Assembly: GCA_047495785.1 (NCBI GenBank)
Contig: JBLDXI010000064.1
Coordinates: forward strand, 310,001-374,000
Source: Lepidodermella squamata
Taxonomy: Eukaryota; Animalia; Gastrotricha
Direction of reading: 5' to 3'
DNA: 64,000 bases
Shown: positions 816 through 64,000 of the stretch, piece by piece
How the letters are laid out: each line of letters begins with the position of its first letter
Numbering within the stretch: position 1 is the first letter of the stretch
Translations under genes and position numbers: made by a program
Notes under the pieces: model-generated
Seen by the model: the letters and a program-made list of their open reading frames with translations, nothing else
The model's database searches: none
What the model was told of the DNA's origin: nothing

Positions 816-3068
816 TCATTCAACATAGGTTTCGCACACTCCGTAGCCCAAACGATTGCCGCAAGGAAAAAATGCCATCAAAGATTGAATGACCCCGCAT
901 TTAGTAACATCTTTCGGAGACTGAAACAGCGTTTGATTGAATGTGAGAGCCGAACCGTCTGACCATTTAAGGACGCCGGACTCTGGAGCAAGGCCCACCC
1001 AAGCGCTGTCGCCGTTGGGTGCAACGCTGCCAACCAGGGCAAGGTCGGCAGCCGTTTTGACAGTTGCCAAGATGCCATCCAGTTGCGAGCAATATAAAGC
1101 GGCATCCTGGTGATTTATCCCATCAACGCCATTGCCAACCGAGAACAGCTGCTTTCGAGCGTTTTGACACTTCGATTCGCTGCTGAACAGAACATTTGCA
1201 GGAAAACGTTTCTCAGTGTTGTCGCCACAGCCGCTTGAGCTCGGCCGGCAGGTTACTGAACCATCGGCAGTTAGCAGGCAGCGATGAAAAGTGGTCTAAT
1301 AAAAAGAAAATATCAATCATTTGCCTACGAGTTCGTCCCGCGGTAAATAGGGCGTATTATAGCGCAAAAAACTGAAGTTCAGAAGTTCATTTTTCGCACA
1401 AGGTTATAGAGCCAAACAGTTCACGCTGCCTGGTATACATTTTGTTTGAAGAAAATTTGAGTTATCAGCATAAGAAAAAGAAATGAGCCATAGCTTTTCT
1501 AGCTGCCCTACAACGGTGGTTTTAATCTGTTTACTAAATTGTGGGAATCTCAAAATCTCCAACACAATTATGTTGTTAAAAAAAACCGAAATTCAATTAC
1601 CAATCAAATCATACAAAATCACTAATAAACGGAAAATGGCTGATGATCCGTTTTAATTCATGGTACATCAACACGCGTTGAATTTTTCAAATTTCGAAAA
1701 CCTGAAATTTTCAAAGAAATAAACTCACCGGAGGCGATATATCAGTCATGCATTTGTCGTGATTCAGCTGAAAGGTGACCAAGTTTGAGAACAGCTTAAC
1801 CTGTTATAGAGAAGCAGTTGCTACCGGAAAATCCGTGCTTTTGGTTCAGCGTTACCCGAATTTGATTTAGGGGACAAGCGGCTTAGCAAGACTGACGGTT
1901 AGATGAATCTTTGCACGAAACGGCATTCTGACAACCGAGAGTAAATGCCCCAATTGCGAAAACAGAAGAATAACTACTTACTCCGAGCAGGCAAGCTGCG
2001 CGGTTGACGTAGACTTTGCTCGAGTATTGCTGAGTTTCATTGCTGGCGAAACAGCCAGGGCTCTGCGGTCGGCAGTCGTTGAACTTTTTCGTCGCAGAAT
2101 CGAAGCAGCGGATGTGCGGCTTTTCGCTGACTGGAACTGTGACTGAAATGAAAAAAGGAAACTATTATCAATTTCTACCCAGGTTTGTACCCAATTTTTA
2201 AAATAATTCAAAATTAGATTTTTCAATTGTCATTCAGTTGATAAAAATCGAAACGAACCTGTTCCATTGGTGCATGCCGCAAGAGTTGAATACAGAGTCG
2301 ATTCAGTCACCTAAAAAAACCAGGAATCATCAAAGAATAAACACATCAACCCTTTCAAATCGCTTACCGAGTTGTTTGGGCAGGCGTACGGGTCCGGAGC
2401 ACAAGTCATGATGACGTTGTTCGAGGTGCAACGCCTGAATTTTGAAGTCTGAAATTATAAAAAGATAAAGCATAATCTATAATGGCCTTTAGTTTTCGGA
2501 ATTCTCACCTCGAATGCAGCCTTCTTCTTCTCGCATTCGTTGAGGTTGAATTTCAAACTCAACGTCGGTTTTTGATCATCGAACCAGAACGTCTGGAGCA
2601 GCAAAATAAAATGATAGTCTCATGCGTAATTACTGACTCATCGAACGAGGCTTACATTCATGTCACCCTGGTTGTTACAGCCAATGTTACCAGGTACGCA
2701 AAACGGGGTAAGAGCCTCGTATTTGTAGCACATCCTGGCGTTCTATAAATAAAACAGACAACGATGAACATCAATTTAGCAGAGAAGTTAACAGACTCCG
2801 GTGTTGCAGATCCCGGCTGTTCGGAAGGTTGAGCCCAACTATCAATAGAGAAATATTTCTATTGATTAGCTCTCCGGAGAAATTTCACAGTAAAAACCTG
2901 ATATTCGGCGAGTGGATCACAGCCTTTAGCAGCTGATACGCAGCTGGTGAATTGGTTGCTGAACTGCGAGAAGCACCGAACACTTGTCACAGCAACCTCT
3001 TTACCCAAAGCCTTGTTGCTTGGTGCTAGCATGAGGGCTAGCAGCAGAGCGTGGAAATTCGAAGCCAT
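816..3068 (-). pseudogene. Secreted four-Cys-module x6 + C-type lectin gene with premature stop (10 exons)
   Basis: Signal peptide MASNFHALLLALMLAP. Exon-by-exon paralogy with 33495..35766. C-terminal CTLD (WVGL...WSDGS...CETYVE*). In-frame TAA at 1883-1885 where the paralog has TAC. Confidence 0.8.
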
Positions 3069-3986
3069 GTTATCGTATTAACTTTGAAAACAAATACCTA
3101 AGCTAAAAATTCACGTTATGAAAATTATAACTAAAGAACTGTGAATTACGGTGCCATACTTTATATAGTGAATTTGTGCGACCTGAATTTGAAAAAAGTT
3201 TGGCACGCGACTACATTATTGATCAACCAACGCTCTATCCGCCCATTAGCAAAATTGACTATTTTAAAAAAATCGACAGACTAAAAATTCCCTTTTCCAA
3301 TTATTTTAATTTCGGCTGAAAAATATTAGATTTCACGGTCTATCGACAGAGCTCATATCCATGTTTAAGGCTCGCATGATTAGTTTTCTAGAATTAGTTG
3401 AAAACAGCTGTTTAGCAAACTTTCGGCGAATTTGCCATTCTTTTGCCGCGGTTGGCTCTTCAGGAAATTGTTTGAATATTCTAAGAAAATTAGTTTATCA
3501 ATATTGAGAACTTTCCCTATCCAACGATATAAATTTCGTCAGTTAAATATTTTATTTTGATTTTCCGAGATTTTAAGGTCGTTCAAACTTGGACATAGAG
3601 TGGACATAGAGTTGGTTAGAGTTCTTTTTGGGTCCCGTCGTTGTTGTTATGAACTGGCTAAAAAAATAATTATTTAGACGGAATCAGGCATTTCGAACTT
3701 GATTTCAATGCTCTTTGGGTGGCCGCTAATTCGCCAATCTTATTCCAGGCATATATTTTTAGGTTTCTAACAAATATAGCTCTTTTCAATTATAGATAAA
3801 TGAATAAAGGCTGATGATACAGCTACTAGCATTTATTCTCAGGAATGAAATCATAATTTGCCAAATAAATAATAGCTGAACTCAAAGAATACGACGTGGC
3901 TAGTCATTGTTTGAAGTAACGTCAGCAGTTTATTAGTAACCAGCAGTCGTTAATGAAGATGGGCAACTGACTGGCGGCTTGTTAAC

Positions 3987-6900
3987 CTAATGCGTGCCAG
4001 TCGTGAAAGCGGCGCAGTTGATTTCGACGATTCGCATTTCTTCAAAACTCAGAACCTTGTTGAATAAGTTCAGGCAAGCCAAACTGCCCAATAGCTGGTC
4101 TTGCTGGCCTGACCATGAACTGTCAAATGGAAGTGAATGAACCATGCTTTACTCATTAAAAAAGTTAAGCTGAAACTAACCGCCCTAGGCTGAATTCCCC
4201 GCTAGCCGTGAGAGGCCGCGAGCTGCTTCCAAGCAATCCACCCTCCGTTTGGATATAGAATCTCAGCTCATTGTTGTTGGAATTGTACGTTATCGTCAGA
4301 AACTGCCATGCCATTGTTGATGGTGCCTGGATCGATTGAGAAATAAAAGAGCTACCATACGGCCGAATTTGATACGTTCCGCCACTTTTCTGTAGTTTAA
4401 GTCCTGGCGTCCCTTCATTTGGGGCAAATTCGAATATCGAGCCGCTCGCGCCGTCTGGAATGGTGGCTAGTAGAGTGAGGGTAAAACTGCCAGTGCTTAG
4501 CTTGGCTTTATCAGCAACTACAGCTATTAGTTCGGTTGTATTGAGATAGAAGGCCGTGTTGGGTACGCCGAACGGTCCAGTAACTTGTAGAAGAGGCGTG
4601 TTTGGGGCCGTCGCGTCAGCTCTGGGCTCGACTACGTCATTGAAATCAGTAACCAGCGGCCAAAGAGCTGTGTTCGACTGTAGGATAGCTTTCAAATTCT
4701 CAGGGGCCCAAGTTTGTCCAGCATGAATTTGTAAGCATCTCCTTCGAAGTATCCACAACTGCTGGATTGTTAGGGCTTTGTTGTATATCGATAAGCAGGA
4801 AACTCCACCGAAGAGCGGGGCTTCGGCCAAGGAAATGGCGCCAATGTTCATTTTAGTGCTAGTAACTGGCGGTTCCACGCTCACCATGTAGGTGAGGCTG
4901 TCGCAAACTATTGTCAGTTGACTGGAGGCACGGTCGTAAGTGACAGCGACAAAAATCCAAGCTGGAAAATCTTTTCCGATAGCAAGGCATTGAAATGATT
5001 TAACCGCTGACTCGGAATCTGTAAAAAGAATTTGACGAACCCGTAAAAAAGCTTCAAGAATGTGAACGAGCTAAAAATGATTATGAAAACAGTGAAATGA
5101 ATACAAATGAATACGTATAAATGAATGGCAGAAAGGTATAGGTAATCTATTCAGCAATAAGCAAATTCATTTGAAACAAATTCACAGGCTGAACCATTTA
5201 TAGTTTACAGGGCCTCTGTCTCATGGCTAAAACTGAAGTTGAACCGACAGAATTATGAGTAATATTTTCAGCGACACGCCAAAACAACCGCTTTGATGAC
5301 TCATTCGATCGTACTTTGACGAGCCTAACGTAAAGAGGGAGTACGTTCGGCTTATTTGTGCACTCATCGTACTTATCGTAACTTGATTTTACGTTCAAGG
5401 GTCGAACGTACTTTCCATTAATAAGCTATAAATAGTAAAGTGGTTGTTTTGGCGCGTCGCTGAAAATATTACTCATAATTCTGTCGCTTCCGATATAAAC
5501 AGACAGATCACCATCAACTTGTAAGCATTATTTTTTATCAGTTGCTCACCGGTGTATATGAGCAGCGTGTTGTTCGAAGACGCATACAAAATGCGGAATA
5601 GCAGTGCCGTGTCGTAGAACACAAAGATCGGCGATAGAAAAGCTTTCGATCGGCTATTCAGGCCGACAAAAATTGAAATTGTGAAAGACGATTGGGTGAA
5701 GTCGAGCTTGCTACTCTCTATTACCACATAGCCTGCTGTGCCACCAGTATCGAGCCTAGTATTTGCGAATGCGAAGGGGCCAGTTGAGAAAAAAGACCCT
5801 GCAGCCCTTGCACTGACGCTATTTCCGCTAATATCATTCGTGTTATAGGTTTCTGTCAGCGGTAAGTAAGCCAAATCCTTTGGCAGTCCGAAGGGCATCT
5901 CTGAAAATGACAGCTGAATCATATCCATCACGAAATTCCGACCAACTCACGTTGCTCGCATAGCTCAAAGGTGCTGAACAATAAACCATTAGATACCTGA
6001 ATGAGACCAGCCAGGTTCTACATTACGATTTCATCAAGATATCAAATTATTCTCACATAATTTTCAGGGCAGCCGTTATCAGAGGGCACACATTGATATA
6101 GCATCAACACTTGATTCGTGCACAAGATGTACTATATAGGAGAGAAAAAACAATCATTCAGGTTTCAGGTTCAGTTCGAGTACTAAGCTATTCATTTAAA
6201 ACGAATTCAAGTAGTAAAAAAGTTGTGAAGAAAAATTTTCGCAGTTTTCTTTATTATGTTTGCTTACCGTAAATACCGAATTAGAAGGATATAATTTAGG
6301 GATATAACAGACCAAAATAATTACCGTATTCTACCAGATTCAGTCATTGCCCCTGAAATAAATTATTACTTACGAATGATGCTCCCCAGGCGGCATAATT
6401 ATCGGAATATGTCCCAGTGGCGAAAACAGTATTCTGAAAATACCGATTGCAACTAGTTAACGAAAAATGTGGACAGTGACAAACCGTAAGCTCTCCTTGC
6501 GGGCAATTAGGCGAGTCCTGGCATGATCTCGCAACGGCGCATCGATAGGCACTCTGAAAGACTGGATGATAAAACTAACGCGTGAAAGTGATTATCCATA
6601 CCGCATTATTGCATGCAATCTCGGACGTATAAGTGACGTCTCCAACCTAATGAAAACGTTGAAGCACAGCCAAGCAGCGCAACGCTTCAACTTACAGAAA
6701 TTGATGGGCTGATACAAGATTGGAAACAGCCAGTATATGATTTGTCGCCAGCGTTGTAACAATGCACGTAAATGGTTGCTAGTGACATCAAAAAGTCAAA
6801 GTCAGCAATCGAGGTGAATATCAAAGCTGTGAAGACAAACTTATTTTGCAGATTGCGAACGAGTCAAAGCTAGCACTATCCAGGCTTGCGGTCTGAAAAG

Positions 6901-42666: not shown

Positions 42667-44560
42667 ATGCGCCATCACACGGCAACTATTACAACCGTTT
42701 TTCTTCGTTTGGTGTTCGGAGTAGCAGATGCTCAAGATCTCGAATGTGGGACTGTGAACCCCACTGCTATTGCGAAATCAAGAGGCCCTGGCAATCACCC
42801 ACATGACTACCCATGGCTGGTTAGTTAATTTGATAATTTATCTTTGAATAGAAACAGGATGTTTGTGCAAGGTCTTCCTGGAAATTAATAACAGCCGCGA
42901 AACGTCAACATTATATTGCGGAGCTTCTCTCATACCGAGGCAATGGCTGATAATGCTGGAGAGACTCCAATCTTGTAATTTTCTCCATTTCCGCTATTTG
43001 ATTGTCCATGCTTGCTTTCCACAGGATCAAAGTTCGGCATAACGTCAGTGTTCGTGCGAAGACAGCGTCATACGAATCTTTTGTTTCTCCACCGCCTCTG
43101 GTTCATCCAATTTACAACGGACAACGGCAGTCAGCATTTCTACGACTATGATTTCGCTCTGTTGCGATTGACGACCCCAGCTCATCGATTCTCGCAGCAG
43201 ATTCTCGCTCAAATGCAACCCTGGATATAGTTACTACACATCAGTCAATATGGCCGCGTGCATGCCTATATTTAGACCTTCAAAAATTTGAAGATGTACC
43301 CTAGTAGGTAAGGAAAATCTCAAAAATATGCCCGATTCAGCGAATATCATCTCTAACTATTTAGGCTGTGGTACCGTTCCAGCAATTCAAAACGGCAACG
43401 TATCTCCTGGTATGTCGAGTATCGGAGTTACCCGGAGCATATCATGCAACCAACGTTTTGTGCTTCGTGGAAATGCTTCCATATTTTGCCTCTCGAACTT
43501 GACGTGTTCCCAGTCTGGTCAGACAACGAAGTCAGACAACGAAGACCTGTGAGTTTCTACATTTATGACTAACACCAACAAGAATAGGTAAGCTTAATAT
43601 TCCCTTCCTTCGGAGGAGCTTTTAGTACACTTCCTGCTTGAAGAAATCACCAAAAAACCACATGAGGACCCTCTGGTCAAATATATTCAGGTCTGAAATC
43701 ACCCGTAATTACCCTCAGCTCGAGTACCCTACTTTGTACTTTGTACACTGACTCGGATTATATTTCGTGGCTGTTAGAAATAATAATGTCACCTACATTC
43801 TTGGAAACGGCAAGTATCAAGTATTATCCCAATTGCAAACTAAAATCTGTTAGCGACTGTTTGCAAAATCCGTAGTTTTCTCCATGGCTCTCCTTGAACT
43901 ACTGATGTCTGATGTCTGTTTACTGTTTATATAGATTCGTGAAATGCACGAGCAGTTGTGGAATGTGACAGCCTTTACAGATGGCGAGGCGCAGGGCGCA
44001 GGTGCGGCGGCTCGTTGCTGAGATCGACGACACCATTGGCGGCACGTTCGACCCGAACTGCCGCAACCCCGATGAGTTCAGCTGTAGTAATTTTTCATAA
44101 TTCAATGAAAAATGGCACCCTGCTACACAGTGCGACGTGCAATCAGACCAGGTATTGCAAATTGCTCATCTGCTCGTAAACCGTGGAGCTGATGTGAATT
44201 ACAAGGAGGAATATGGCATGACGGCGTTAATGCTTGCGGCTTGGAATGGACAAGTCAATTTAGTTGGACAGTTGCTGGATCACAGCGCTGCAATCGACGC
44301 TAAGGATAAAAGTGGCTTGACGGCGTTGATAATGACGGCTAGTAGTGGGCAAGTCGAGTTAGTTCGATTGTTGCTCTGTCGAAATGCTGCCATCGGCCAT
44401 CAAGGCCAAAGATATCGGTGGCAATATCGGAGGTACAAATAAGGATGCCACAAATTCAGATGGCATGACAGCTCTTGATATTGCTATTTGTTCTAACAAA
44501 ACCGCTGCGGCCGATTTGCTGAGGTCGCGAGAAGCAAGTCGAGCGAAGTCATCGTGTTGA
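42667..44560 (+). pseudogene. Decayed trypsin-CCP-ankyrin gene
   Basis: Remnants ECGTV...HDYPWL, YCGASLI, DYDFALLRL, a CCP exon (~43364-43548) and the ankyrin exon (~43935-44560). Frameshifts; the GDSGGP exon is missing. Confidence 0.85.
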
Positions 44561-52505: not shown

Positions 52506-55496
52506 TCAGATATCATTAGGGAATATTTCCTCGACCATGAAGTAACTCGTTCCTCCCAGTCCGATTCCTAAGGAAAGGAAATCCGGAAAATATGTTCAAT
52601 ATCTAATGAAATTGCATTATAGCTCACCGCTGTTGTACATCATCCCTGGATAAGCATTTGATTTGACCGCGTATTGAATTGTGAGAGTTACTTGGCCTGA
52701 AGCAACTGGCATCTTGCAGATACCCTCAACTGGAAATTCACAATGAAATTCGAGAAAAAATGCAGCAAAATCAAGTACCGTAACCCGGTCGACCGATGTG
52801 AACCCCGTGATACCCATTCCAAAACACCATTGAAGTTTCGATCTGCGTTGGATCGGTGCACTCTTTGCCATTTATACGAATGAACCTTGGAAAAAGCTAT
52901 CAACTACGGCAATCATTTGGAAAATCCTCTAGTTCACCATTTTAGCTGCTCAGACCAAGACGGGCTAATCGCAAGGGTCCCCATAAACATACCAGTGTAC
53001 CATTTCACATGGATTGATGATGTGTCTTGCAGTTTTGTCCAGACGAAAATCTAGAAAATGTAACAAATTACCATCTGAAGGAATTTTCGTTCAAATATAT
53101 GCCTTAAGGGGTGTATTTGCACATGGTTGAGTCGAACAGCTACTGCTACAGCTTCCACTGTAACGACACGAGTCCTTGAAACTGAAATACTGCCTGTTGT
53201 AGTAGGGCAGATCGGCCATAGTTCCATCCGATAGCAATAAGCCATTTGTCGGTAACAACTCGTTGATTTCTTCGACGAAAATCTGAGAAGGCTGGCCGTT
53301 GCCAAGGTTTACTTCGATGTATGAAGCATTGTCGACGCCGTAAGAAATGCAGTTCTGATCGACCATGATGTTGATGTCGTATTTGCCAACTGGAAGATTC
53401 CTGCAAACTCCGTCAACTTGGATCGAAAAATAAAAGACAGTAATTGAGAGTAGGGATCAAATTTTCATTGCGAGGTTGAGGGTTCAATTATTTTTTCGAT
53501 CGGGATAGGGGGGTGGGGGGGGGGGGGGGTTCAGTTTTGAAATGTTCAAAACACTGCGCGAAGTAGAATCCTGGAACTAGGGGGTATTTTCGGGCACCCT
53601 TTTTCGGTTTTCCAATTCAATTCGAGCTGATTTTGATTTTAAATCTTTAATTGCCGCTTACGATTGAAAGTTGTCGCGCCAACCGCCATTCGCCCAGCCG
53701 TGTAGTTGGCATCTTGAGCCTGGTACAGCGTGTGCTCAATCGGAAACGGATCCGCGCATTGGCGGCCGTTGATGAGCGCGAAAAATCGAATGCATCGCTT
53801 GTAGACATCGAACATCACCTTGGCGTGCCAGTAGATGCGCAACAACGAAGTAGCACTTCGCTTCTTATATTTCAGAATTTGCTGAAAGAAACATTTCAAA
53901 ATGGAATTAGGGCGATGTGGGTTTGTCTTACGTAGGGAAGTTGCCTTTCTCCTGTTGTATACGGCACCGACTCTTGAAATTGATCTGAAACAGTATTGAA
54001 TACTGTCGAAGATCGACAAATCGCAGCATCATCTGACGGTGAAATGGGAGCATTGTGCAAACAATAAATATAAATTGAAAGGCATTGTTCAAACCTGTTT
54101 TGAAAAGATAACTAGCAGGTATGAATTCTTCGAAGTAAATGAAGCTCGGTGTAGGGTAGGAATTCATGACAACTCCAATCGAGACGGCCATGCGCTGAAC
54201 GAGCTCCCGCCGCAAGGACACGCCGTACGAACGATCACCACGCGGCACCTCGTTAAATGTACACAGCATTTCGCCTATATGCCATAGCGTTAAAGTGTGT
54301 TCTAATATCGTGCTTTGACTTACCCCCCACGGCAACGCCAGCATCTGCGCTGTAGCCAGGATTTTTCATATCGCGACCGATGTGGTGTGTGAGGCTGATA
54401 TTTAGCCAATTTCGAAACTGGGTTTGATGTTAGGTAATGTGTTCCTACCCTTTCTCGCCCATGCACAAATTGCCGTTTAGAGTCACGTCAACGTAAGCCA
54501 CTTCTTTTCCGCAACAACTCTGTTCCCATATATACCTTTAGATTAATGAAGGCTCAATCATTCTATCAGAACGATATCAAGCGCTTACCATGTGAAGCTC
54601 ATTGATACTCGAACGTGAGTGAAATCGTGTAGCTTTTTCCAAGTTCCTTGCTGTTTTTAAGTAAATATCCAGCAATTTTATGAGCTGCCGAATAATTTTC
54701 TTTATCGTTCACTTTTTATTCCAGCACGGAAAATGGAAAATCATAAAAATTGGACGCGCAATATTGGAAATTGAGGGAAAAGGGATACCTCAGCGAATGA
54801 TTGCATGACCTTGATAATATTGATTAAGCTACGATCTCACCTTGAAGTTCGGTATGGCTGTATAACCGCTGATATTTCGCGAGAACTGCGTGAAATGAAC
54901 CCTGCGCGGATATTCAACACAGCCGTTTTCTTCGCCTGTAAATCGAATACATGTTATGCTTGTTTGGAAAATATCTCGGTTTCCTCCGTACCAGCGCAAT
55001 ACGACTTTGACCCAACGCAGTCCTGAACACAAACTGGAGTGATCGCGTTTGGGTCACTTGTCGATGGGACCAGGCAAAAGTTATCGCAATCCTGCACGCC
55101 ATTGCGGCGATCGGTCACGCCCTCGTCGAAATTCATCGCCGAGATGAGAACGCCCCGCATCAGGGCAGAAACGCTGCTCGAATGTTCTGACCTATCGAAA
55201 TCTCGCGCTTGGACCTTGGTGGCTCGCATCAGGATGCAGGTGCGGTTGTACGGCTCGAAGAAGGCTGTTCGACACGGCGGGTTGGCCGAGGACAGGCATC
55301 GCGTGGCACAGCTCGATTGGTCCTTAGTTGTGAGTTGAGGCTGGATAATGTAACGCCCGAGGGCGACGTCCATCATGTCAAGGGTGATGAAAGATTCCGA
55401 GGTCTGTATCATGCGCGTGCATTTGCCTCGGAATATCATCTCGCCCACAGCTGGAATTGTCCATAGTGCAAAGACAAAAGCTAGGTTTGCAATCAT
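52506..55496 (-). CDS. Secreted PAN/Apple + 3x CTHRC1-C-terminal-like domain protein (~13 exons)
   Basis: Signal peptide; PAN motif CATRC...CRTAFF...C. Three repeats of the pattern K-x-x-x-x-S-x-x-x-[IV]...NGxxCxxPxxIE...[DE]GxC...SxxxVEE as in CTHRC1 (first repeat weakest). Ends EEIFPNDI*. Confidence 0.72.
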
Positions 55497-56432
55497 TTTT
55501 TCGTGTCAAATTTTGTGATACTGCCCGTAACGAAAATGTAACATCGGCGCGTAGACAAATCAAAAACCGGCGCTATTGACGAGGGCGCGATAAATTATTG
55601 AGAACACGTAGCGTCGCGCTGTCAAAAACACACTATCTCTTTTTTGTATTTTGAATTGATAACCCAAGTACTGCAATCAAGAATTCTCCTTCCGCCGTAA
55701 TCCGACTTGTTAATAAATTAAAGATTCAGCCTAGACATCTCAAGCTTGTCTGAAGCTCAGACATCGAAACTGGCAAGTGACCTGGACATCTTCAATTGTC
55801 TCGCGGCAGTTCGACCGGTAAGGTCGATTTAGCTCTTTCATCTCTTTCATTCCTTCGTCATGTAATAAAGGAATTCGCTGTTTGGAGAGCGAGCGCGGCC
55901 GCTCGGTCAGGGTTATGGCACGACTTGAGAAACGCAATCTTAAATATGAAACGATAATCAATTTCTACCAGGGATATGAACGCTAAAACGTCAGATCAAA
56001 TCGAAGATCGAAAGAATACTACTTTCTAGTGGCGCCTCTTTTGATCCTGGATCAAATTTTTCGCATTAATTATTTACAGGGTATGTACTCGAGCGGAAAT
56101 ATATGGAAAACAAGCATCCGATTGTCTCATCGGAGATCGGCCGGTAAGCTTATTGATTAATCAATCAATGTTTAATGTTTCAATGTTGCTTGGGGTTCAT
56201 CCCCACCGGGCAGTCGAAGTTGCAGGAAGCAACGCGTTCAGGCTGGTAACAGCTGGCTCTCATACTCTCCAAACTGCAGGAAAGATTCAACAGGTCAACG
56301 CTTGTCTAGCATTACATCTCTGGCTAAGATTTATTATTCAGTAAAATTGAACTCGTGTTCTTTACTGAAATCATCTTTCGCTTCCTGACAGTAATAACTA
56401 GATCGAAGCGCTTGGTGGGGAAGTGAGTGATT

Positions 56433-59400
56433 TCAACATTTGGACGACTTTGCCCTAATTGCACCTCGCGATACCAGCAGATCGATAGCAACTAGTCTGT
56501 CAAGACAAATGGCAAGATCCAGAGCTGTCCGGCCACTGTCATCTTTGAAATCCATATCTGCCCCCGCATCCAGCAGAAACGGAACAGCGCTGACCTGACC
56601 AACGAAAACCGCTTGCATCACTGCCGTCCTGCCGCTGTTGTTCGTGGCGTCGATGGCCGCGTTGCGATCCAGCAACAGCTGTATTTTTCTTACGTCCCCA
56701 AGCATAGTAGCTTGTATTAATGCGGTCGCACCGTCGTTATCCTTCGCCTCTATCGAAGCGTTTCTATCTAGTAAAAGGCGTAAAGCATCGATATTTCCGT
56801 ACGAAGCCGCATGTATCAACGCCGTGTATCCCTTGTTGTCTCTTGCCTCCTTGGCGGCGTTTCGATCCAGTAGAAGTCTTACAGCGCCGGTTTTTCCTTT
56901 ACTAGCCCCGCGCATCAATGCCGTGATTCCGTTTTTGTCCTTAGCTTCGATAGCAGCGTTGCGATCCAGTAACAGTCGAACTGTCTCGATGTCTCCATTT
57001 CCAACCGAATGAATCAACGGCGTTGAGCCTTCCACATCCTTGGCCTCGATTGAAGCGTTCCGATCTAGCAACAGGCGAGCTACTCTGACTTGCCCATTTT
57101 CAGCTGCGTGAATTAGCGCTGTACAGCCACTCTCATCTTTGCCATCGATGGCGGCGTTGCGATCCAGCAAAAATCGAGCTGCTTCGACATCCCCATTAAT
57201 AGCCGCTGCCATCAACGCCGTCCTGCCATAGGTACCCTCCTTGGCATTCACATCAGCCCCGCGATCCAACAACAGCCTAGTAATTTCCAGCTGCACGTCC
57301 GACTTTCGACTAGTGCATAGCCAGACACTGTATAACAGGGTGCTATTTTTTGTAGTCGACCTATCGCAGTACGATACTTTTGGGTTGCGCCAATTTGGAT
57401 CGAACTTGCCACCAGTGGAATCGTCAATGTCCGAAACTAGTTGCCGAACTTGTGCCACGTCGCTCGTGTTCGATGTGACGTTCCACAAACGTTCGTACAA
57501 TTCTTGGACCTGGAGAAAGGCATTACAAGCTTTTAGATTTCTCGACTGTGGGTTAGGATAACGTAGTGATCTATGTGAAAATTTTAAAGTGTGAAGTAGA
57601 AAGCATCAGATACAGAAATTGGGGTGCTCAACAGTGGGCGAAGTAAGGGGGAATGGGCGGTATCGTACCAAAGGGGAGACACTCCTTAGATAGAGCAAAA
57701 AACAAACAAGATTATAGCATTTTTCTCGGAATTTTCGGCGTAAAATATAATATAATAAAATAACCATCTCATTCGATAGAGAAGCGCTTCTAGTAATTCG
57801 GAATAAAATTTGGAATTAGTGAGAAATGGAAGTTTTTCTCTGGGAATTTTAGAAAGTAATCAAAATTCGGAAAAATTACCATTGGCGAATAGGGAGATGA
57901 GTGAATTAAAATGGAGGTCGCAAGCCCACTTATTAACGTTTTGGTGTGAATTTTATTTACTATAGGTAGATCGCTAGTTTCAGATCTGTATGGACATTGT
58001 GGAACCGCTGGTAAGTTGAACTGTGGCGCGCACGCTGATTGGTCAATTTATCGTTGCTAATGACTCCGGAATGAAACAATTTAGTCGTGCGATCCACTAA
58101 TAAATGATTTTATATTTATGCAAAAGATGACCTTGCCACACCCACTGCACGGTTTCCATTGACCACGAGCGTTAACTCCATATTAATGGTGGTAAATTGC
58201 TGCGGCAAAAAACACTTGTTGCAAAAAATCTTATGGCTCGCACGACCAACATGTTTCCAACCAATAAAAAGAAAACTTACAGGTAGCCTAGTCACGCAGG
58301 AACCTGGTCGGGACCAAGTGAAGTTCGAGAGGCACACTATGGAGGCATTCCCTCGAATCACAAATTCCTGGTTGCAGGATATATTTCGGGTAGATCCGAT
58401 GCTCGAGAGACCGGGGGATACGTTGCCGTTTCGTATCGGGCCAACAGCACCACAGCCTTGACTGAATGCTTTAGATAAGGCGAGGGAACACAAAATTTAC
58501 CTACTTGTAGGGTTACACTTCCCATTTATCACTGGACTGAAAGGAGGCAAGCAAGAGGCAGTCGAAACTGAGGCAGAGTAGGCAAAACCTGGGTTGCATT
58601 TGACACTCACCACGCCTCCTCTTTCCACCACTGAACCTGGCTTCAGAACAACGCCGGTATCTTCCAAAGTTTCTGGGTCCATCTGGGTAACGAACCCCGC
58701 TGTTACGTTTGGTACAAGACAAGAAGTCGTCTCGCTGCGAACATCCGTGTAGTTCGAAATCCAATCGAGAACCTTGCAGACCCTGCTGTAGATCCCGGGA
58801 GTGTATCCATTGCACGAATCGTCACCATTCGAGATTATGCCAAGTAGGAAAGTTTTCCTCGACTTCGAGCACATGAGAGGACCCCCAGAATCTCCGAAGC
58901 AAACATCGCTGCCATCGGCGGCTAAACACATTTTCGAATCGGTGATGTTGACTGGATTAGAACGGTCGCGAGAATACTCCATCGAGCAATTTCGGTAAGA
59001 TCGTACTTGAAGATTGAGCTTCCTCGGGATCTCGGATATTCTAGCTGAAATGCACAAATGCAATACAGCTAAAGGTTTGGGGCCTTGGCCAGAACAGTTT
59101 CTCGTTTTTGAAAATGGAGGGGGGAAGCGTTTGCCCTGCTTCTATTTGAGTCTAAGCCTCTATTTGAGATTGTGCATCATCCTTTTTCATGTTTCAACAA
59201 ATACCTAATTGCTAACGAACCCACACCGCTCATGAGACGTACTATAGGACGCCGCGGCTTCGAAGCTCCCATTACATGACCCCGCGGCTGCCACCCACTG
59301 TGCATAATTATTCTGAGCATAATTTTCACTCCAGTAATTTCGAAATAAAAAAAAATTTAATTTATAAAATTTTAATTTTTTAAATGTCAATAATTAAAAA

Positions 59401-61151
59401 CTGCTGAGAATTCATTTACAGCAAAAGATCGGCCAGACGCTGTGTAAAGATGTGTTGATCTCGTTGATCTTAAGCAAAAAAAGAGGCTTGAGAGGATTGC
59501 AAAAAGTGTAATGAGATGATTCATTGGTCGAGTTGGACTTTGGACCTCATTAAAAATATCAAGCTTTTTCTGATTCTACGCATGCCGCGGCGTCGTATAT
59601 TACGTCTCAAGACACCGCTAAGTCTAATTAATAAGGAATAATTCGTATTTGAAGTTTAAAACCACACCATGGTCATCATAGTTCTGATCAGTCCTCCGAT
59701 TTTATTTCGTGACTCGAAAGTGTCTGCCACTGGGAAGAAATTGTAAAAGGGTGCATATGCCAATTTGGATCTTTTGATTTTTTCGCTAAGCTGTTTCCAT
59801 TGGTTCGAAGTTCGCAAAAACTAGTTAATACGCGATTAAAAAATCATGTCATTTCCTAGAGCGTAAAGCCTGCAGTCTTCGATGCTGTTATACAGTAGTA
59901 AGGTCTTTTATATACAGTGCTCCCTCGATAACTGTATGTAAATCCAAGGGATTGACATACTGTATGCGAATTGACCCCAGCCAGCTGCGATCCCCGAATC
60001 ACATCCGTCGATCGCATTCGCTATATGTGAGTTCGCTCGGCACATGGTTCTCGGGTCTGGTAAACAAATTGGCCTGATCTGCTGCGAGAACGCCGGGACT
60101 GGGCTCGTCAATCGCAAGAGAGCGAAATCAAAGTCAAAGAAATTCTGACTTCCCTTGTATAGCGGATGAACCAAAGGTGGCAGAGACACGAGAGATTCGC
60201 GAGAAGCTATTTCTGACTGGACACTAATGTTATGGCGCCCGAGCAACGCTTTAATCCTGTAAGAACACGGAATTGCCTTCATCGGATAGTAAAGTGAAAA
60301 TCAAAAGCTACGCACGGTCAGGAATTTGTTGGGTTGAAAATTGAAATATCTCACACGCGCCCGAATTATTTTTAGCTCCAAGCTTGGGTTAAGCTTAGCT
60401 AAAAATAAAAAGTGTAACTCGGAAAGACCAAAAAAATTTATTAGTCTTAAAAATATGAATATTCATAAGGTGCTAATTAATATTCCGAAGCCCTCAAAGT
60501 TGTTAATCTGGTCAGGAAAATTATGGATAAATAATGTTTGATTTTTTGTAACCTCACTTTAAGTGCTCAAATTTTTCTGCAATTTTTGGCAATCAACTAA
60601 GAATGTCCTAGTTTCATGACATCTCATGAATATATTCATATTATTGAAACTATCCCCCTTTCTTTGGAGCTATTTTTGGAGATCTTTTGCTGGGGATAAG
60701 CAGCCTCATTTCGCACGTGCGAAAAATGTCAACTAGCATCGCCTCATTTCCACCGTGCGGATCTGTTGACTGTCACTGCTGTAAAAACAGTTCGAAGACT
60801 CACAAGATAGGGGTGGTTCCGGAATTCCAAACACAATGAGCAGCTGTTATCAGCCATTGACTCGAGATTAGGGACGCCCCGCAATTTGAGGCAGACGTAT
60901 CAAGCCTGTTATAGATTTCAAGCAAGACCTTGAACATATTAATTTTTCGGTTGTGTGAAGCGAATTCAAATTAGGCTAACCAGCCACGGGTAAGCATGTG
61001 CTTCTGCAGGGTGACTGCCTGGGCCTCTTGATTTCGCTTCAGTAGGTCCTGCATTCGAGTAGTTCACGTTCACAGTCCCGCATTCGAAATCCTGAGCAAC
61101 AGCAACTCCAGAAATCAAAGCTAGAAGATAGGTAGCCGTAAGTAAGCGCAT
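56433..61151 (-). CDS. Secreted trypsin-like serine protease - CCP - CCP - ankyrin repeat (~9) fusion, 6 exons
   Basis: Signal peptide MRLLTATYLLALISGVAVA; triad TAAHC, DFALL, GDSGGP; two sushi-like domains. Phase-0 splice from 58281 to 57509 into the ankyrin exon. Confidence 0.82.
59231..59611. mobile_element. hAT-type MITE (381 bp), intronic
   Basis: 28-bp imperfect TIRs CA/TTGAGACGTA...GACGCCGCGGC; 8-bp TSD ACACCGCT (59223-59230; 59612-59619). Confidence 0.9.
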
Positions 61152-61355
61152 TGCAAGATGTTAGATGAAAGCTGAACTACAGCATGAAGAATAAAGATTA
61201 TCTGTAGTAGAATTATTCTCCATACTAAAAAAACTGTCAACACATTTCTATCTGTATCTTATATAAATATAATAGAGTTAAAACAAGTGAAAACACGTAA
61301 CACGAAGCATTCATCAATTCATGTTGCATGTTGAGCTCTCCTTAAGAAATTTGTA

Positions 61356-63902
61356 ATGCGTCTACTTATAGCTGCCAATCTTCTCGTGCTAATTTCCGGA
61401 GTTGCTATTGTTGCTCAGGATCTTGGCTGCGGAACTGTGGTACCGATGATAATGCCTAAAATAAGTGGCCCTGGCAGTCACCCGACAGGACCGCATGAAT
61501 ACCCTTGGCTGGTTTGTTCAGTTCAAATTGTTTTCACCTAACCTAGAACGGAAGCTTGTTCAAGGTTATGCTGGAGATTTACTTCAGCCAGTCAGTCTCC
61601 TACTGCGGAGCAACTCTCATCTCGAGGCAATGGCTGGTAACTGCTGCTCGTTGCGTTTCGACTGCCGAAGGCACCCCTGTTTTGTATTTTTCTTCGCTAT
61701 TTCCCTCTAATAAGATAGTTGAAAGTTGTTTTGATGTGTACAGAATCAAAGCGATGCTAGGGCGCTATAACATTAGCGTTCGTTCAGAGAAAGCCTCTCG
61801 CGAATTACTCGTGGCTGTGCCGCCTTTGGTTCATCCGCTATACAACGGCAGTCAGAATGATTACGACTTCGCTCTCTTGCAATTAATGAGCCCTCTTCTG
61901 AAATTCTCGCATGAGATCAAACCGATTTGCTTACCAGACGTAGTTACCATGTGCCGAGCGAACTCATTTACAGCAAATACGATCGACGGATGCGATTCGG
62001 CAGTAGCAGTTGGCTGGCGGCATATTGCGCAAAGTAGGTCATTCTCTTGCCAATAAGGGCCCGTTCTCAGAGTGCGATCACGGAGTTGCCAGGGATGGAC
62101 AGGGATTTTTGTCCATCTCTGGCTTCAAGAACACAATATCGTCTTAACGCGAATATCCTATTTTTCGTTGTGTTCCGAGAGCTCGAACAAATCTTTCAGC
62201 GATTATGAGCTGGCGTGCGCCGATTTAGGGTGTGAACTTTCACCCGAATTGATCCACTTCGATCATAAATTGCTAGATATTGCAAGCTTAGACTCAAAAT
62301 GTATTGCGGTGATTCTGAAAAATCTCAAATAAATGGAAAAAAGTTCAAAAATTATTTCTATTCTCAAAAACTGCTGGAGGAGATACTCGCCTTGATCGGC
62401 GAAGTTTCCCTTGCCTTTTCGAGATAAAAAGACGAGAGGGTCAAATTTCCTGGGCGAAATTAAATAATAAGATCAATAAAAATTGAATAAGATTATATCT
62501 TATATCACTGGGCATTGATGCATTTCAGCTAGAATATCCGAAATTCCGAGGAAGCTGGACCTTCAAGTACGATCTTACAAAAATTGCTCGATGGAGTATT
62601 CTCGCGGCCTCTCTGATCCAGTCAACATCACCGATTCGAAAATGTGTTTAGCCGCCGATGGCAGCGATGTTTGCTTCGGAGATTCTGGGGGTCCTCTCAT
62701 GTGCTCGAAGTCGAGGAAAACTTTCCTACTAGGCATAATTTCGAATGGTGATGATGATTCGTGCAATGGATCCACGCCTGGGATGTACAGCAGAGTTTGC
62801 AAGGTTCTCGATTGGATCACGGAAAACACAGATGTTGGCGGCCAGACGACTACTTGTATTGTCCCTACCGTAACAGCAGGATTTGTAACGCGAGTGGACC
62901 AAGAAACTTCGGAAGATACCGGCGTAGTTCTGAAGCCAGGATCAGTGGTGGAAAGAGGCGGGTCCGTGAGTGTCAAATGCAACCCCGGTTATGCCTACTC
63001 TGCCTTTGTGTCAACCGCCTCTTGCTTGCCTCCATTCCGCCCAGCGATAGCTGGCAGGTGCAACCCTACAAGTAAGTGAATGTTGTATTTAAAGCATTAT
63101 CTAAAGCATTCAGTCAAGGCTGCGATGCTGTTGGCACAATACAAAATGGCAACATATCTCCTGGTCTGTCGAGCGTCGGAGCTACCCGAAACATATCCTG
63201 CAATCAGGAATTTGTGATTCGAGGAAATGCTTCAATAGTGTGCCTCTCAAACTTCACTTGGTCCCGACCAGGTTCCTGTGTGACTAGGCTACCTGTAAGT
63301 TTTCTATTTATTTCAAGCTTTCAACTACAAGACCTTATGTCTCGATTATTCTATTAGCCATTTGAGAGGTTTCATTTAGGGGAATTTATTGAGGGAACTT
63401 CTACTACATTTAGATCCGTGAAGTGTACGCAGAATTGTGGAATCTAACAGCCGAGACGGACGACGTGGCGCAGGTTCGGCAACTAGTTTCGGAGATTGAC
63501 GATTCCACTGGTGGCAAGTTCGATCCAAATTGGCGCAACCCAAATGTATCACATTGCGATAAGTCGACTACAAAGAACAGCACCCTGTTATACAGTGTCT
63601 GGCTGTGTTCTGGTCGAGAATCAGACGCGCAGCTGGAAATTGCTCGGCTGCTGTTGGATCGCGGAGCTGATGTGAATGCCAAGGAGGGAAGCTACGGCAT
63701 GACGCCGTTGATTGCAGCGGCTAATAACGGGGATCTCGATGGAGCTCGACTGTTGCTGGATCGCAACGCTGCCATCGAGGCCACTAGTAGCGATGGCTTC
63801 ACTGCGTTGATATATGCCGCTGCATTTGGGAAAGTCGAGATGGTTCGCCTGTTGCTGGATGGTTGCGCACCAAAGGTCCCACAGGGACGGAGTCCCCAAT
63901 AA
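61356..63902 (+). CDS. Inactive protease homologue - CCP - CCP - ankyrin; ankyrin array interrupted at ~63860
   Basis: Same exon structure as 56433..61151. TAARC in place of TAAHC. Phase-0 splice from 63294 to 63414 into the ankyrin exon. Homology stops after LLLD. Confidence 0.75.
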
Positions 63903-64000
63903 GCGATAGAGTACGGCGCATCAGCTACTGCTGATGCGGAAGGGGTTATAGGAAATTTTGGGGAAACTCCTAGGGAAACTCCTGTGATAGCTGTAAAATT

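Follow-up and report, generated by a model that had tools for sequence, protein, structure and literature searches.

Gene Structure of the Locus

The window (the whole stretch of 64,000 nucleotides that was analysed) carries three copies of a gene in which the coding segments of an S1A protease and of CCP/Sushi modules are followed by ankyrin repeats. Copy A occupies positions 61151 to 56433 of the minus strand, where six exons with GT-AG borders combine into one stop-free reading frame of 2397 nt (798 amino acids). The predicted protein starts with a signal peptide and an S1A protease; a weak CCP-like module and a clear CCP follow, and an ankyrin solenoid of about ten repeats comes last. It has no membrane span. 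The features of the locus are as follows:

60981 to 61151, minus strand: exon 1 of copy A, with the start codon, signal peptide (MRLLTATYLLALISGVAVA/QD), propeptide, K-S-R-GPGSHP site and YPWL; a homologous exon is found in paralogues
60804 to 60928, minus strand: exon 2, protease segment with His57 (ITAAHC); Pfam Trypsin E 5.3e-07; preceded by a 52-nt intron
59961 to 60256, minus strand: exon 3, the part of the protease that contains Asp102 (DFALLRL) and Cys122 (ICLPD); Pfam Trypsin E 1.6e-05
58505 to 59044, minus strand: exon 4, C-terminal half of the protease (Asp189, Ser195, Gly216, Gly226) followed by a CCP-like module with four Cys; Trypsin E 1.5e-17
58281 to 58468, minus strand: exon 5, canonical CCP/Sushi module (31.3 bits); preceded by a 36-nt intron and ending in the phase-0 donor CCT/gtaagt
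57510 to 58280, minus strand: intron 5, 771 nt, between the second CCP and the ankyrin exon, the join in question; read-through from the second CCP would run into a stop after 54 codons
56433 to 57509, minus strand: exon 6, ankyrin solenoid, 358 amino acids and the stop codon; matches Pfam Ank families (Ank_2 E 3.9e-53)
56330 to 56335, minus strand: AATAAA, 100 nt past the stop codon of copy A, a likely polyadenylation signal
61152 to 61355, no strand: spacer of 204 bp between the divergent start codons of copies A and B, which stand head to head; a duplicate pair on contig C4 (L002) is arranged likewise
61356 to 64000 (window end), plus strand: copy B, with the exon order of copy A and a 119-nt phase-0 intron (63295 to 63413) before the ankyrin exon
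42667 to 44560, plus strand: copy C, a decayed remnant with the order of copy A

A sequence-only reading of this DNA had reported the same domain order in all three copies. The order is indeed kept, but the ankyrin exon of copy B is invaded by repeats, breaking off at 63861 within an array of units of about 640 nt, and the ankyrin part of copy C is spread over three frames. The same reading described an intact catalytic triad with Asp189, Gly216 and Gly226. This holds for copy A but not for its neighbours: copy B carries His57Arg (TAARC), while copy C has a frameshifted exon 3 and has lost both TAAHC and the Ser195 half of the protease.

Protease and CCP Modules

The catalytic residues of copy A lie in TAAHC (His57), DFALLRL (Asp102) and DVCFGDSGGP (Asp189, Ser195), and Asp194 is present as well. 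Assigned by eye against chymotrypsin numbering, the S1 pocket is trypsin-like, with Asp189 (D-V-C-F-G-D-S), Gly216 (S-N-G) and Gly226 (P-G-I-Y); the position of Trp215 is occupied by Asn. The closest solved relatives of exon 4 are chymotrypsinogen and enteropeptidase, and the propeptide encoded by exon 1 holds a cysteine that would pair with Cys122. The zymogen activation motif Arg15-Ile16 (IVGG) is absent, and K-S-R-G-P-G-S-H-P is found there instead. Across the family the motif at this site is K-x-x-GPGS(H/Q)P, with I or V right after the Lys in some paralogues. Because the IVGG motif has been replaced in this way, the catalytic competence of copy A is not assured, and the enzyme may catalyse poorly or come under a different kind of regulation.

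Two CCPs had been proposed to follow the protease. The second is secure, with four Cys, F-T-W and a Sushi score well above the PF00084 cut-off of 20.7 bits. The first, at the end of exon 4, has four Cys without the Trp and reaches 15.3 bits (E 0.026), which is under that cut-off. Pfam gives no CUB or EGF match in copy A, and the CCPs are placed C-terminal to the protease.

Proposed Joining of the Second CCP to the Ankyrin Exon

At the junction of copy A both the donor (CCT/gtaagt) and the acceptor (ctccag/GTC) are in phase 0, so that the ankyrin acceptor is in phase with the CCP donor, as had been noted from the letters of this gene. The same arrangement is kept in the 16 paralogues compared at the junction (N-cap identity 56-95%), all of which pair a phase-0 donor behind the second CCP (P/gtaagt, gtgagt and similar) with an ankyrin acceptor of the form ag/(A/G)TC. 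The length of the intervening intron is highly variable among them: 50 and 57 nt (L011 and L016), then 119, 189, 404, 771 and 1,500 nt, up to 5.4 kb. The introns of 50-57 nt are too short to contain either a promoter or an unseen exon with a membrane span.

Sequence conservation of the ankyrin exon begins at its first codon when paralogues are compared, and in 12 of the 16 an in-frame TAG, formed by the acceptor itself, lies directly 5' of the exon. The copy A exon has no ATG at its start, in agreement with the earlier observation, and its first in-frame Met is residue 100 of the exon. Taken together with a modelled helix that begins at residue 2, these features indicate that the ankyrin exon cannot stand alone. 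Linkage was examined across the 121-Mb genome: of the 46 near-full-length matches to exon 4 (counted by hand), 38 are followed downstream on their own strand by an N-cap exon at most 6 kb away, where about 0.1 would be the chance expectation. A genome search with a 63-residue junction peptide found no intron-less (processed) copy of the junction that would have proved the splice, each apparent upstream extension being an acceptor site. The paralogue comparison on which the join rests argues for splicing of exon 5 to exon 6, which we infer from these sequences.

Ankyrin Array and Predicted Secretory Features

Exon 6 opens with an N-cap that is specific to the family and holds two invariant Cys as well as two conserved N-x-T sequons. 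Eight regular helix pairs come next, and a C-cap closes the array; its cysteines are Cys775 and Cys798, the C-terminal residue. In an AlphaFold2 model (pLDDT 93.5) the ankyrin part forms ten helix pairs, of which the first helix spans residues 2-15, and residues 1-347 make up one solenoid that superimposes on the repeats of ankyrin-B/R with TM scores of 0.80-0.83 over 344 columns.

In copy A all cysteines of the ankyrin part lie in the caps, as pairs. Family arrays of 291-952 residues have just 4-5 Cys: an invariant pair belongs to the N-cap, and the C-cap contributes a second pair (AIC... and the terminal ...SSC), both members of which are missing together in L002+ and L009. Paired cysteines near both ends had been pointed out before and prove to be conserved across paralogues. 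Cys makes up 0.09% of the residues in 235 internal family repeats, compared with 1.5% in 101 other ankyrin arrays, 12 of which have an equally low content. In the paralogue N-caps, one N-x-T sequon has an invariant Asn55, and WN(V/A)T is nearly invariant too. Paired Cys restricted to the caps and conserved sequons both fit an extracellular ankyrin domain.

The N-terminus of copy A is a predicted signal peptide with a hydrophobic core and A-V-A ahead of the likely cleavage point. The top window of the hydropathy profile starts at residue 1 and no other 19-residue window exceeds 1.72, which confirms the claim that there is no transmembrane segment. The copy A product is therefore predicted, from its sequence, to be secreted.

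Selection and Variability in the Family

Copy A can be compared with its duplicate on contig C4, from which it differs by a dS of 0.116. Over 795 codons omega is 0.20; taken by domain, the protease has 0.12, the N-cap 0.16, the CCPs 0.20 and the repeats 0.22. All domains of copy A are under purifying selection. Intron 5 is 87% identical to the corresponding 831-nt intron of the duplicate.

Variation between the repeats of the family is concentrated at particular sites. Positions 1, 6, 9, 10, 12, 31 and 32 show an entropy of 2.4-3.8 bits, while T2, L4, A7-A8, G11, R17-A24 and G33 are near-fixed, and five of the seven variable positions coincide, in our own mapping, with positions randomised in DARPins. 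At the variable positions omega is about 1.1 (1.1-1.3) against 0.39 in the framework, a value inflated by the selection of these positions for their variability; we considered positive selection on the binding face and make no claim for it.

The family comprises at least 85 ankyrin exons of the copy A type, about half of them visibly linked to a protease of the copy A type, and the number of repeats ranges from about 5 to 26. Copy A is an intact, selectively maintained member of this lineage-specific family, which turns over quickly.

Interpretation and Alternatives

We consider it probable, with good confidence, that copy A is one gene for a secreted trypsin-CCP-ankyrin protease of a lineage-specific family, in which the array likely serves as a target-binding arm. 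The mRNA would join five exons (signal peptide, S1A protease, the weak and the canonical CCP) to one large terminal ankyrin exon, and the product would enter the secretory pathway with no membrane span, which would place the ankyrin array in the extracellular space or within a secretory compartment. The ankyrin array would most likely act as the target-binding arm, with the CCP pair as spacer and the protease as effector. That a single secreted polypeptide combines these parts had been the central claim of the sequence-only reading; the paralogues, the pattern of selection and the arrangement of Cys and sequons support it strongly. Pfam does not confirm the first CCP. The further proposal of a target-guided protease with a DARPin-like module is compatible with variable positions on the canonical binding face and stays at the level of a suggestion. 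Catalytic activity and target binding of the copy A product are presumed, as is any immune, toxin or digestive role.

The adjacency of protease and ankyrin exons could instead be mere synteny, the protease ending after the CCP exon and a separate intracellular ankyrin gene starting within intron 5. Ankyrin repeats are usually cytosolic, and an AATAAA lies 323 nt into the intron. Of the 85 N-cap exons, moreover, some 35-40 lack any recognisable protease exon at a distance of up to 6 kb, so the ankyrin exon also occurs alone or with other partners. A separate gene, however, would have no start codon, as the first Met lies inside the modelled solenoid, and in most paralogues it would be preceded immediately by an in-frame TAG. 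Nor would it account for the exact phase-0 donor and acceptor pair in 16 paralogues, for introns too short to hold a promoter or for the N-cap exon that follows 38 of 46 protease exons, and cap-only paired Cys with conserved sequons are unexpected in a cytosolic protein. We regard two genes as quite improbable. The notion that copy A is unexpressed or decaying, a pseudogene in the making, draws on the damage to its two neighbours in the window, copies B and C, and on the quick turnover of the family. With all six exons open, splice sites intact, the catalytic residues and every cap Cys kept and the low omega against its duplicate, copy A hardly looks like one, and this explanation merits very little credence.

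A different objection accepts the fusion and questions the function of the array, which might be an intramolecular regulator of a zymogen-like protease or a scaffold for oligomerisation or matrix anchoring, its diversity reflecting relaxed constraint. The non-canonical activation site does suggest unusual regulation, the conserved C-terminal Cys could form intermolecular disulfides, and omega at the variable positions is near 1 and not clearly above it. Several paralogues have a dead protease (H57R; H57D plus G193A), yet retain long intact ankyrin arrays. We nevertheless find this explanation unlikely, since the variable residues cluster on the canonical concave binding face while the framework is nearly invariant, and since such a range of repeat numbers is hard to square with docking on one fixed protease domain.

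If the array of copy A is indeed a secreted recognition arm, the ankyrin fold would have been made fit for secretion in dozens of genes, with a signal peptide, cap disulfides, glycosylation sites and a protease. It would represent a new way to aim extracellular proteolysis, beside lectins, LRRs and immunoglobulin domains, and would offer protein engineers natural ankyrin scaffolds that are disulfide-capped and competent for secretion. A bolder picture, which we put forward tentatively and hold to be rather doubtful, is that of a large and rapidly diversifying set of secreted effector proteases in this genome, whose choice of substrate is delegated to extracellular ankyrin arrays with a hypervariable binding face on a fixed framework. 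Such a set would be a natural 'DARPin library' coupled to a protease, and would serve for recognition, encoded in the germline, either in defence or in attacking prey or hosts.

Comparison with Known Systems

Few protein-binding modules are as common as ankyrin repeats, which in animals work almost only inside cells. The trypsin-CCP-ankyrin architecture appears to be undescribed, and the literature searched yielded no description of a trypsin-Sushi-ankyrin protein. An exhaustive protein search with the ankyrin exon was dominated by giant ankyrin proteins, none of the matches covering the N-cap. The arrays nearest to the ankyrin exon, metagenomic proteins and one haptophyte protein, do not discriminate between a bacterial and an animal origin of the exon. 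When the N-cap alone was compared with proteins in word-indexed searches, those of 523-1660 residues gave generic ankyrin overlap only, with no Trypsin or Sushi partner, and those of 197-626 residues gave no match. Among the matches listed, metagenome contigs held generic ankyrin only; the one match in GTDB genomes, to a short-chain dehydrogenase, was due to chance, IMG/VR gave no match and the ESM Atlas gave generic ankyrin clusters. As to the organism itself, the assembly has no COX1, and its intron-less HSP70 reaches no more than 83% identity with any database entry, the named matches being scattered among molluscs, arthropods and tardigrades.

Related in design are C1r, C1s, the MASPs and horseshoe-crab factor C, which likewise are secreted trypsin-like S1A proteases with CCP/Sushi modules and in which a recognition part directs proteolysis. 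In these proteins the CCPs and recognition modules are N-terminal to the protease (CUB-EGF-CUB-CCP-CCP-protease in C1r, C1s and the MASPs) and recognition relies on lectin or collagen-type partners. Copy A differs in that its CCPs and candidate ankyrin recognition part follow the protease, and it has neither CUB or EGF modules nor IVGG. Trypsin and Sushi domains are widely found together across the animals, also in non-bilaterians, and the words 'ankyrin' and 'ANK' are absent from the text of the survey of trypsin-associated domains (bioRxiv 10.1101/645952). Relative to the Trypsin-Sushi proteins of this animal 'tryptome', what is new in copy A is the ankyrin array at its C-terminus.

The latrotoxins of widow spiders have long ankyrin arrays whose site of action is outside the cell that makes them, as proposed for copy A. 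In sequence the ankyrin exon matches solved latrotoxins, among others (E 1.7e-45 to 4.9e-31), a likeness of the generic ankyrin kind. Latrotoxins are pore formers without a protease or CCP part, whereas the array of copy A is C-terminal and is preceded by disulfide-rich modules and a signal peptide of the classical type. In structure, the best matches are DARPins and the membrane-binding domain of ankyrin-B/R, which share with the copy A family a regular, consensus-like framework of 33 residues. DARPins and the copy A family also have their variation concentrated at the hairpin tip and at first-helix positions. While DARPins are synthetic and ankyrin-B/R is cytosolic, the copy A family adds its own pairs of Cys in the N-cap and C-cap and its N-glycosylation sequons.

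Gene Structure of Copy A

Eukaryotic gene structure is present in the window, and copy A, a minus-strand gene running from an ATG at 61151 to a TGA at 56435-56433, is described by a six-exon model:

Exons and introns of copy A
61151-60981 (-), exon 1; intron 1, 52 nt (-)
60928-60804 (-), exon 2, Trypsin; intron 2, 547 nt (-)
60256-59961 (-), exon 3, Trypsin; intron 3, 916 nt (-)
59044-58505 (-), exon 4, Trypsin and a terminal four-Cys module; intron 4, 36 nt (-)
58468-58281 (-), exon 5, Sushi (CCP); intron 5, 771 nt (-)
57509-56433 (-), exon 6, ankyrin

Every exon border is GT-AG, the joined frame of 2397 nt (798 aa) is free of stops, and an AATAAA lies 100 nt 3' of the stop codon. Pfam placed Trypsin on exons 2, 3 and 4 and ankyrin families on exon 6 (Ank_2, E 3.9e-53). 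The sequence-only reading had proposed two consecutive CCPs; the second, in exon 5, scores 31.3 bits as Sushi against a cut-off of 20.7, but the first, which closes exon 4, scores only 15.3 bits (E 0.026) and is here called CCP-like. The protein begins with a textbook signal peptide, made up of a hydrophobic core and A-V-A, followed by Q-D. Beyond it, no 19-residue window has a Kyte-Doolittle mean above 1.72, which agrees with the earlier view that a TM segment is absent. All told, copy A is a genuine gene, intact and maintained by selection.

The 36-nt intron at 58469-58504 (-), between the CCP-like module and the CCP, measures 37-50 nt in paralogues and is required to avoid an in-frame TAA in copy A; introns of 36-57 nt seem to form the minimal class of the Lepidodermella squamata genome. 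Positions 59347-59384 are part of the AT-rich intron 3. A 180-aa ORF at 54954-55496 (-), ~900 nt 3' of the ankyrin exon and on its strand, starts with a hydrophobic segment and carries a PAN/apple domain (PAN_1 in Pfam, 24.3 bits); it is probably another gene for a secreted protein.

Probable Joining of the Ankyrin Exon to the Protease-CCP Exons

The case for the join across intron 5 is a comparison within the genome of L. squamata (121 Mb in 151 contigs), and draws on conserved order and borders, the missing start of the ankyrin exon, linkage, selection, and introns too short to hide an exon. More than 100 genomic stretches match the ankyrin exon, and 85 loci match its first 70 residues, the family-specific N-cap; 26 regions were taken for comparison of paralogues. 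The order signal peptide, protease, CCP-like module, CCP and ankyrin N-cap is common to 16 paralogues. In all of these the CCP exon ends at a phase-0 donor (P|gtaagt, gtgagt or gttagt) and the ankyrin exon begins at ag|(A/G)TC, coding for (I/V)-R-E-V-Y-E-Q-L-W-N, so that the acceptor is in phase with the CCP donor as had been claimed. Since N-cap identity to copy A is 56-95% and the intron lengths include 50, 57, 116, 119, 189, ~400, 771, 831, ~1,500, ~1,900, 4,700 and 5,400 nt, these borders have been held through much divergence and complete intron turnover. The introns of 50-57 nt are too short for a promoter or a membrane-span exon.

The ankyrin exon also lacks an ATG of its own at its 5' end, as first noticed. 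Its earliest in-frame Met in copy A is exon residue 100, amino-acid conservation starts at codon 1, and in 12 of the 16 paralogues the acceptor itself forms an in-frame TAG immediately 5' of the exon. An AlphaFold2 model built with 13 paralogues (pLDDT 93.5, pTM 0.89) shows a helix over residues 2-15 and, over residues 1-347, a single solenoid of ten helix pairs, which aligns to ankyrin-B/R repeats with a TM of 0.80-0.83 over 344 columns. According to this model, a start at Met100 would behead the fold.

With pairing done by hand, 38 of 46 near-full-length exon 4 matches are followed within 6 kb by an N-cap exon of the same strand, against a chance expectation of ~0.1. Copy A has a duplicate on another contig (locus L002 on C4; dS 0.116), and between the two, omega is 0.12 in the protease, 0.20 in the CCPs, 0.16 in the ankyrin N-cap and 0.22 in the repeats, so that the ankyrin exon is under constraint like that on the rest of the gene. 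The genome search found no processed (intron-less) copy of the CCP-ankyrin junction, and the apparent upstream extensions considered as such copies all turned out to be acceptor sites. From these sequence comparisons, we hold with high confidence that the join in copy A is real.

Duplicates and Paralogues

Copy B (61356 onward, plus strand) stands head to head with copy A, with 204 bp between their starts. It has the same exon order, with a 119-nt phase-0 intron before the ankyrin exon, and reads TAARC (His57Arg). A repeat array interrupts its ankyrin exon at 63861, at L-L-L-D|R-N-A:

Array of ~640-nt units in copy B
63861-64000, continuing in region L001 (positions 2562-5400; array at G000:C64:373861-376700), at least 5 repeats

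Each unit starts with GGTTGCGCACC and ends with TTTTTCTAG; between the first two lie 204 nt that code for ankyrin, and later units adjoin one another. Splicing of the units at G|GT...AG|AT would preserve the reading frame and insert a single Asp. The entire pair of copies A and B is duplicated at L002 (G000:C4:1552900-1562500; dS ~0.12 for A), where the counterpart of copy B has the same His57Arg and an intact ankyrin exon of 657 aa. Copy C (42667-44560, plus strand) is a decayed third copy which has lost TAAHC and the Ser195 half of the protease, has a frameshift in exon 3 and has its ankyrin part fragmented over three frames. The one domain order claimed for all three copies is kept in A and B and, in decayed form, in C; the intact triad is confined to A. 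H57D together with G193A is found at two further paralogous loci (L009 and L012).

At L010 (5264-6436, minus strand), L013, L015 and L018 (contigs C73, C4, C64 and C10), some ankyrin exons that carry the family N-cap and acceptor either come after a further complete ankyrin exon or lack a protease exon within 6-8 kb. They could serve as alternative terminal exons, belong with more diverged CCP genes, or be orphans. Two ankyrin ORFs at L018 (G000:C10:360600-370599) continue past the usual S-R-G-A-S-R-x-x-S-S-C into a hydrophobic tail (ILFLFLN), which may indicate a further splice donor or a membrane/lipid-associated variant.

The Protease Domain

The motifs ITAAHC, DFALLRL and DVCFGDSGGP of copy A supply His57, Asp102, Asp189 and Ser195; S-N-G (Gly216) and P-G-I-Y (Gly226) complete the specificity residues named at the outset, and trypsin-like specificity is predicted. 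Among solved structures, chymotrypsinogen, enteropeptidase and plasma kallikrein are its best relatives, and the propeptide Cys (E-C-G) with I-C-L-P-D is compatible with the Cys1-Cys122 link of chymotrypsinogen. Where R-IVGG is expected, copy A has K-S-R-G-P-G-S-H-P, and K-x-x-GPGS(H/Q)P is the motif throughout this gene family. The canonical activation site is missing and the Trp215 position is Asn, and the enzyme may be under a different control or catalyse poorly.

A Probably Extracellular Ankyrin Array

Ankyrin arrays of 291-952 aa contain only 4-5 Cys each. The pairing near both ends that had been described is borne out, with two invariant Cys in the N-cap (exon residues 48 and 65) and two in the C-cap (A-I-C and the C-terminal S-S-C). 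Both C-cap Cys are replaced together in L002+ and L009, as expected of a disulfide pair. Cys makes up 0.09% of the internal repeats (7 in 235 repeats) and 1.5% of 101 other ankyrin arrays (1,191 repeats, same pattern), 12 of which are as Cys-poor as the protease-linked family. The N-cap carries sequons at N-(G/S)-T, with Asn55 invariant, and at the nearly invariant W-N-(V/A)-T; N-A-S is present in 51 of 235 repeats. The ankyrin part, in its own right, seems to be adapted to the secretory pathway. The signal peptide, disulfide-rich partner domains, lack of a membrane span, cap-only Cys and sequons together argue for an extracellular array.

Across 238 repeats, T2, L4, A7, A8, G11, R17-L-L-L-D-R-N-A24 and G33 are nearly fixed, and positions 1, 6, 9, 10, 12, 31 and 32 show an entropy of 2.4-3.8 bits. 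By our own mapping, five of these seven are presumably positions randomised in the published DARPin design, and we take them to sit on the hairpin tips and first helix, the concave binding face. Between nearest-neighbour repeat pairs, the framework has an omega of ~0.39 and the variable set one of 1.1-1.3, which indicates absence of constraint and not positive selection, since the set was picked for its variability. Repeat number ranges from ~5 to 26 between genes.

Relation to Known Proteins

No N-cap relative was found in a 5.8-billion-protein index (length bands 523-1660 and 197-626 aa), among the matches listed from JGI metagenome contigs, or in IMG/VR; the sole match in GTDB genomes was a chance hit in a dehydrogenase. 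Generic ankyrin arrays dominated the output of an exhaustive HMMER search with the ankyrin exon. An HSP70 gene of the genome that lacks introns reaches 83% identity at most to proteins in the database, and its named matches are spread among molluscs, arthropods and tardigrades. Our literature search found no description of a trypsin-Sushi-ankyrin protein, and ankyrin goes unmentioned in a survey of the domains associated with trypsin in animals (bioRxiv 10.1101/645952).

The product of copy A is very probably a secreted S1A protease-CCP-ankyrin fusion belonging to a large lineage-specific family. The best-supported mechanism is one in which the ankyrin arm would direct the trypsin-like protease to a target. 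The family is a rare instance in which ankyrin repeats have become adapted to the extracellular milieu. As far as can be told, the architecture is undescribed, and it forms a new variant within the known class of mosaic secreted serine proteases.
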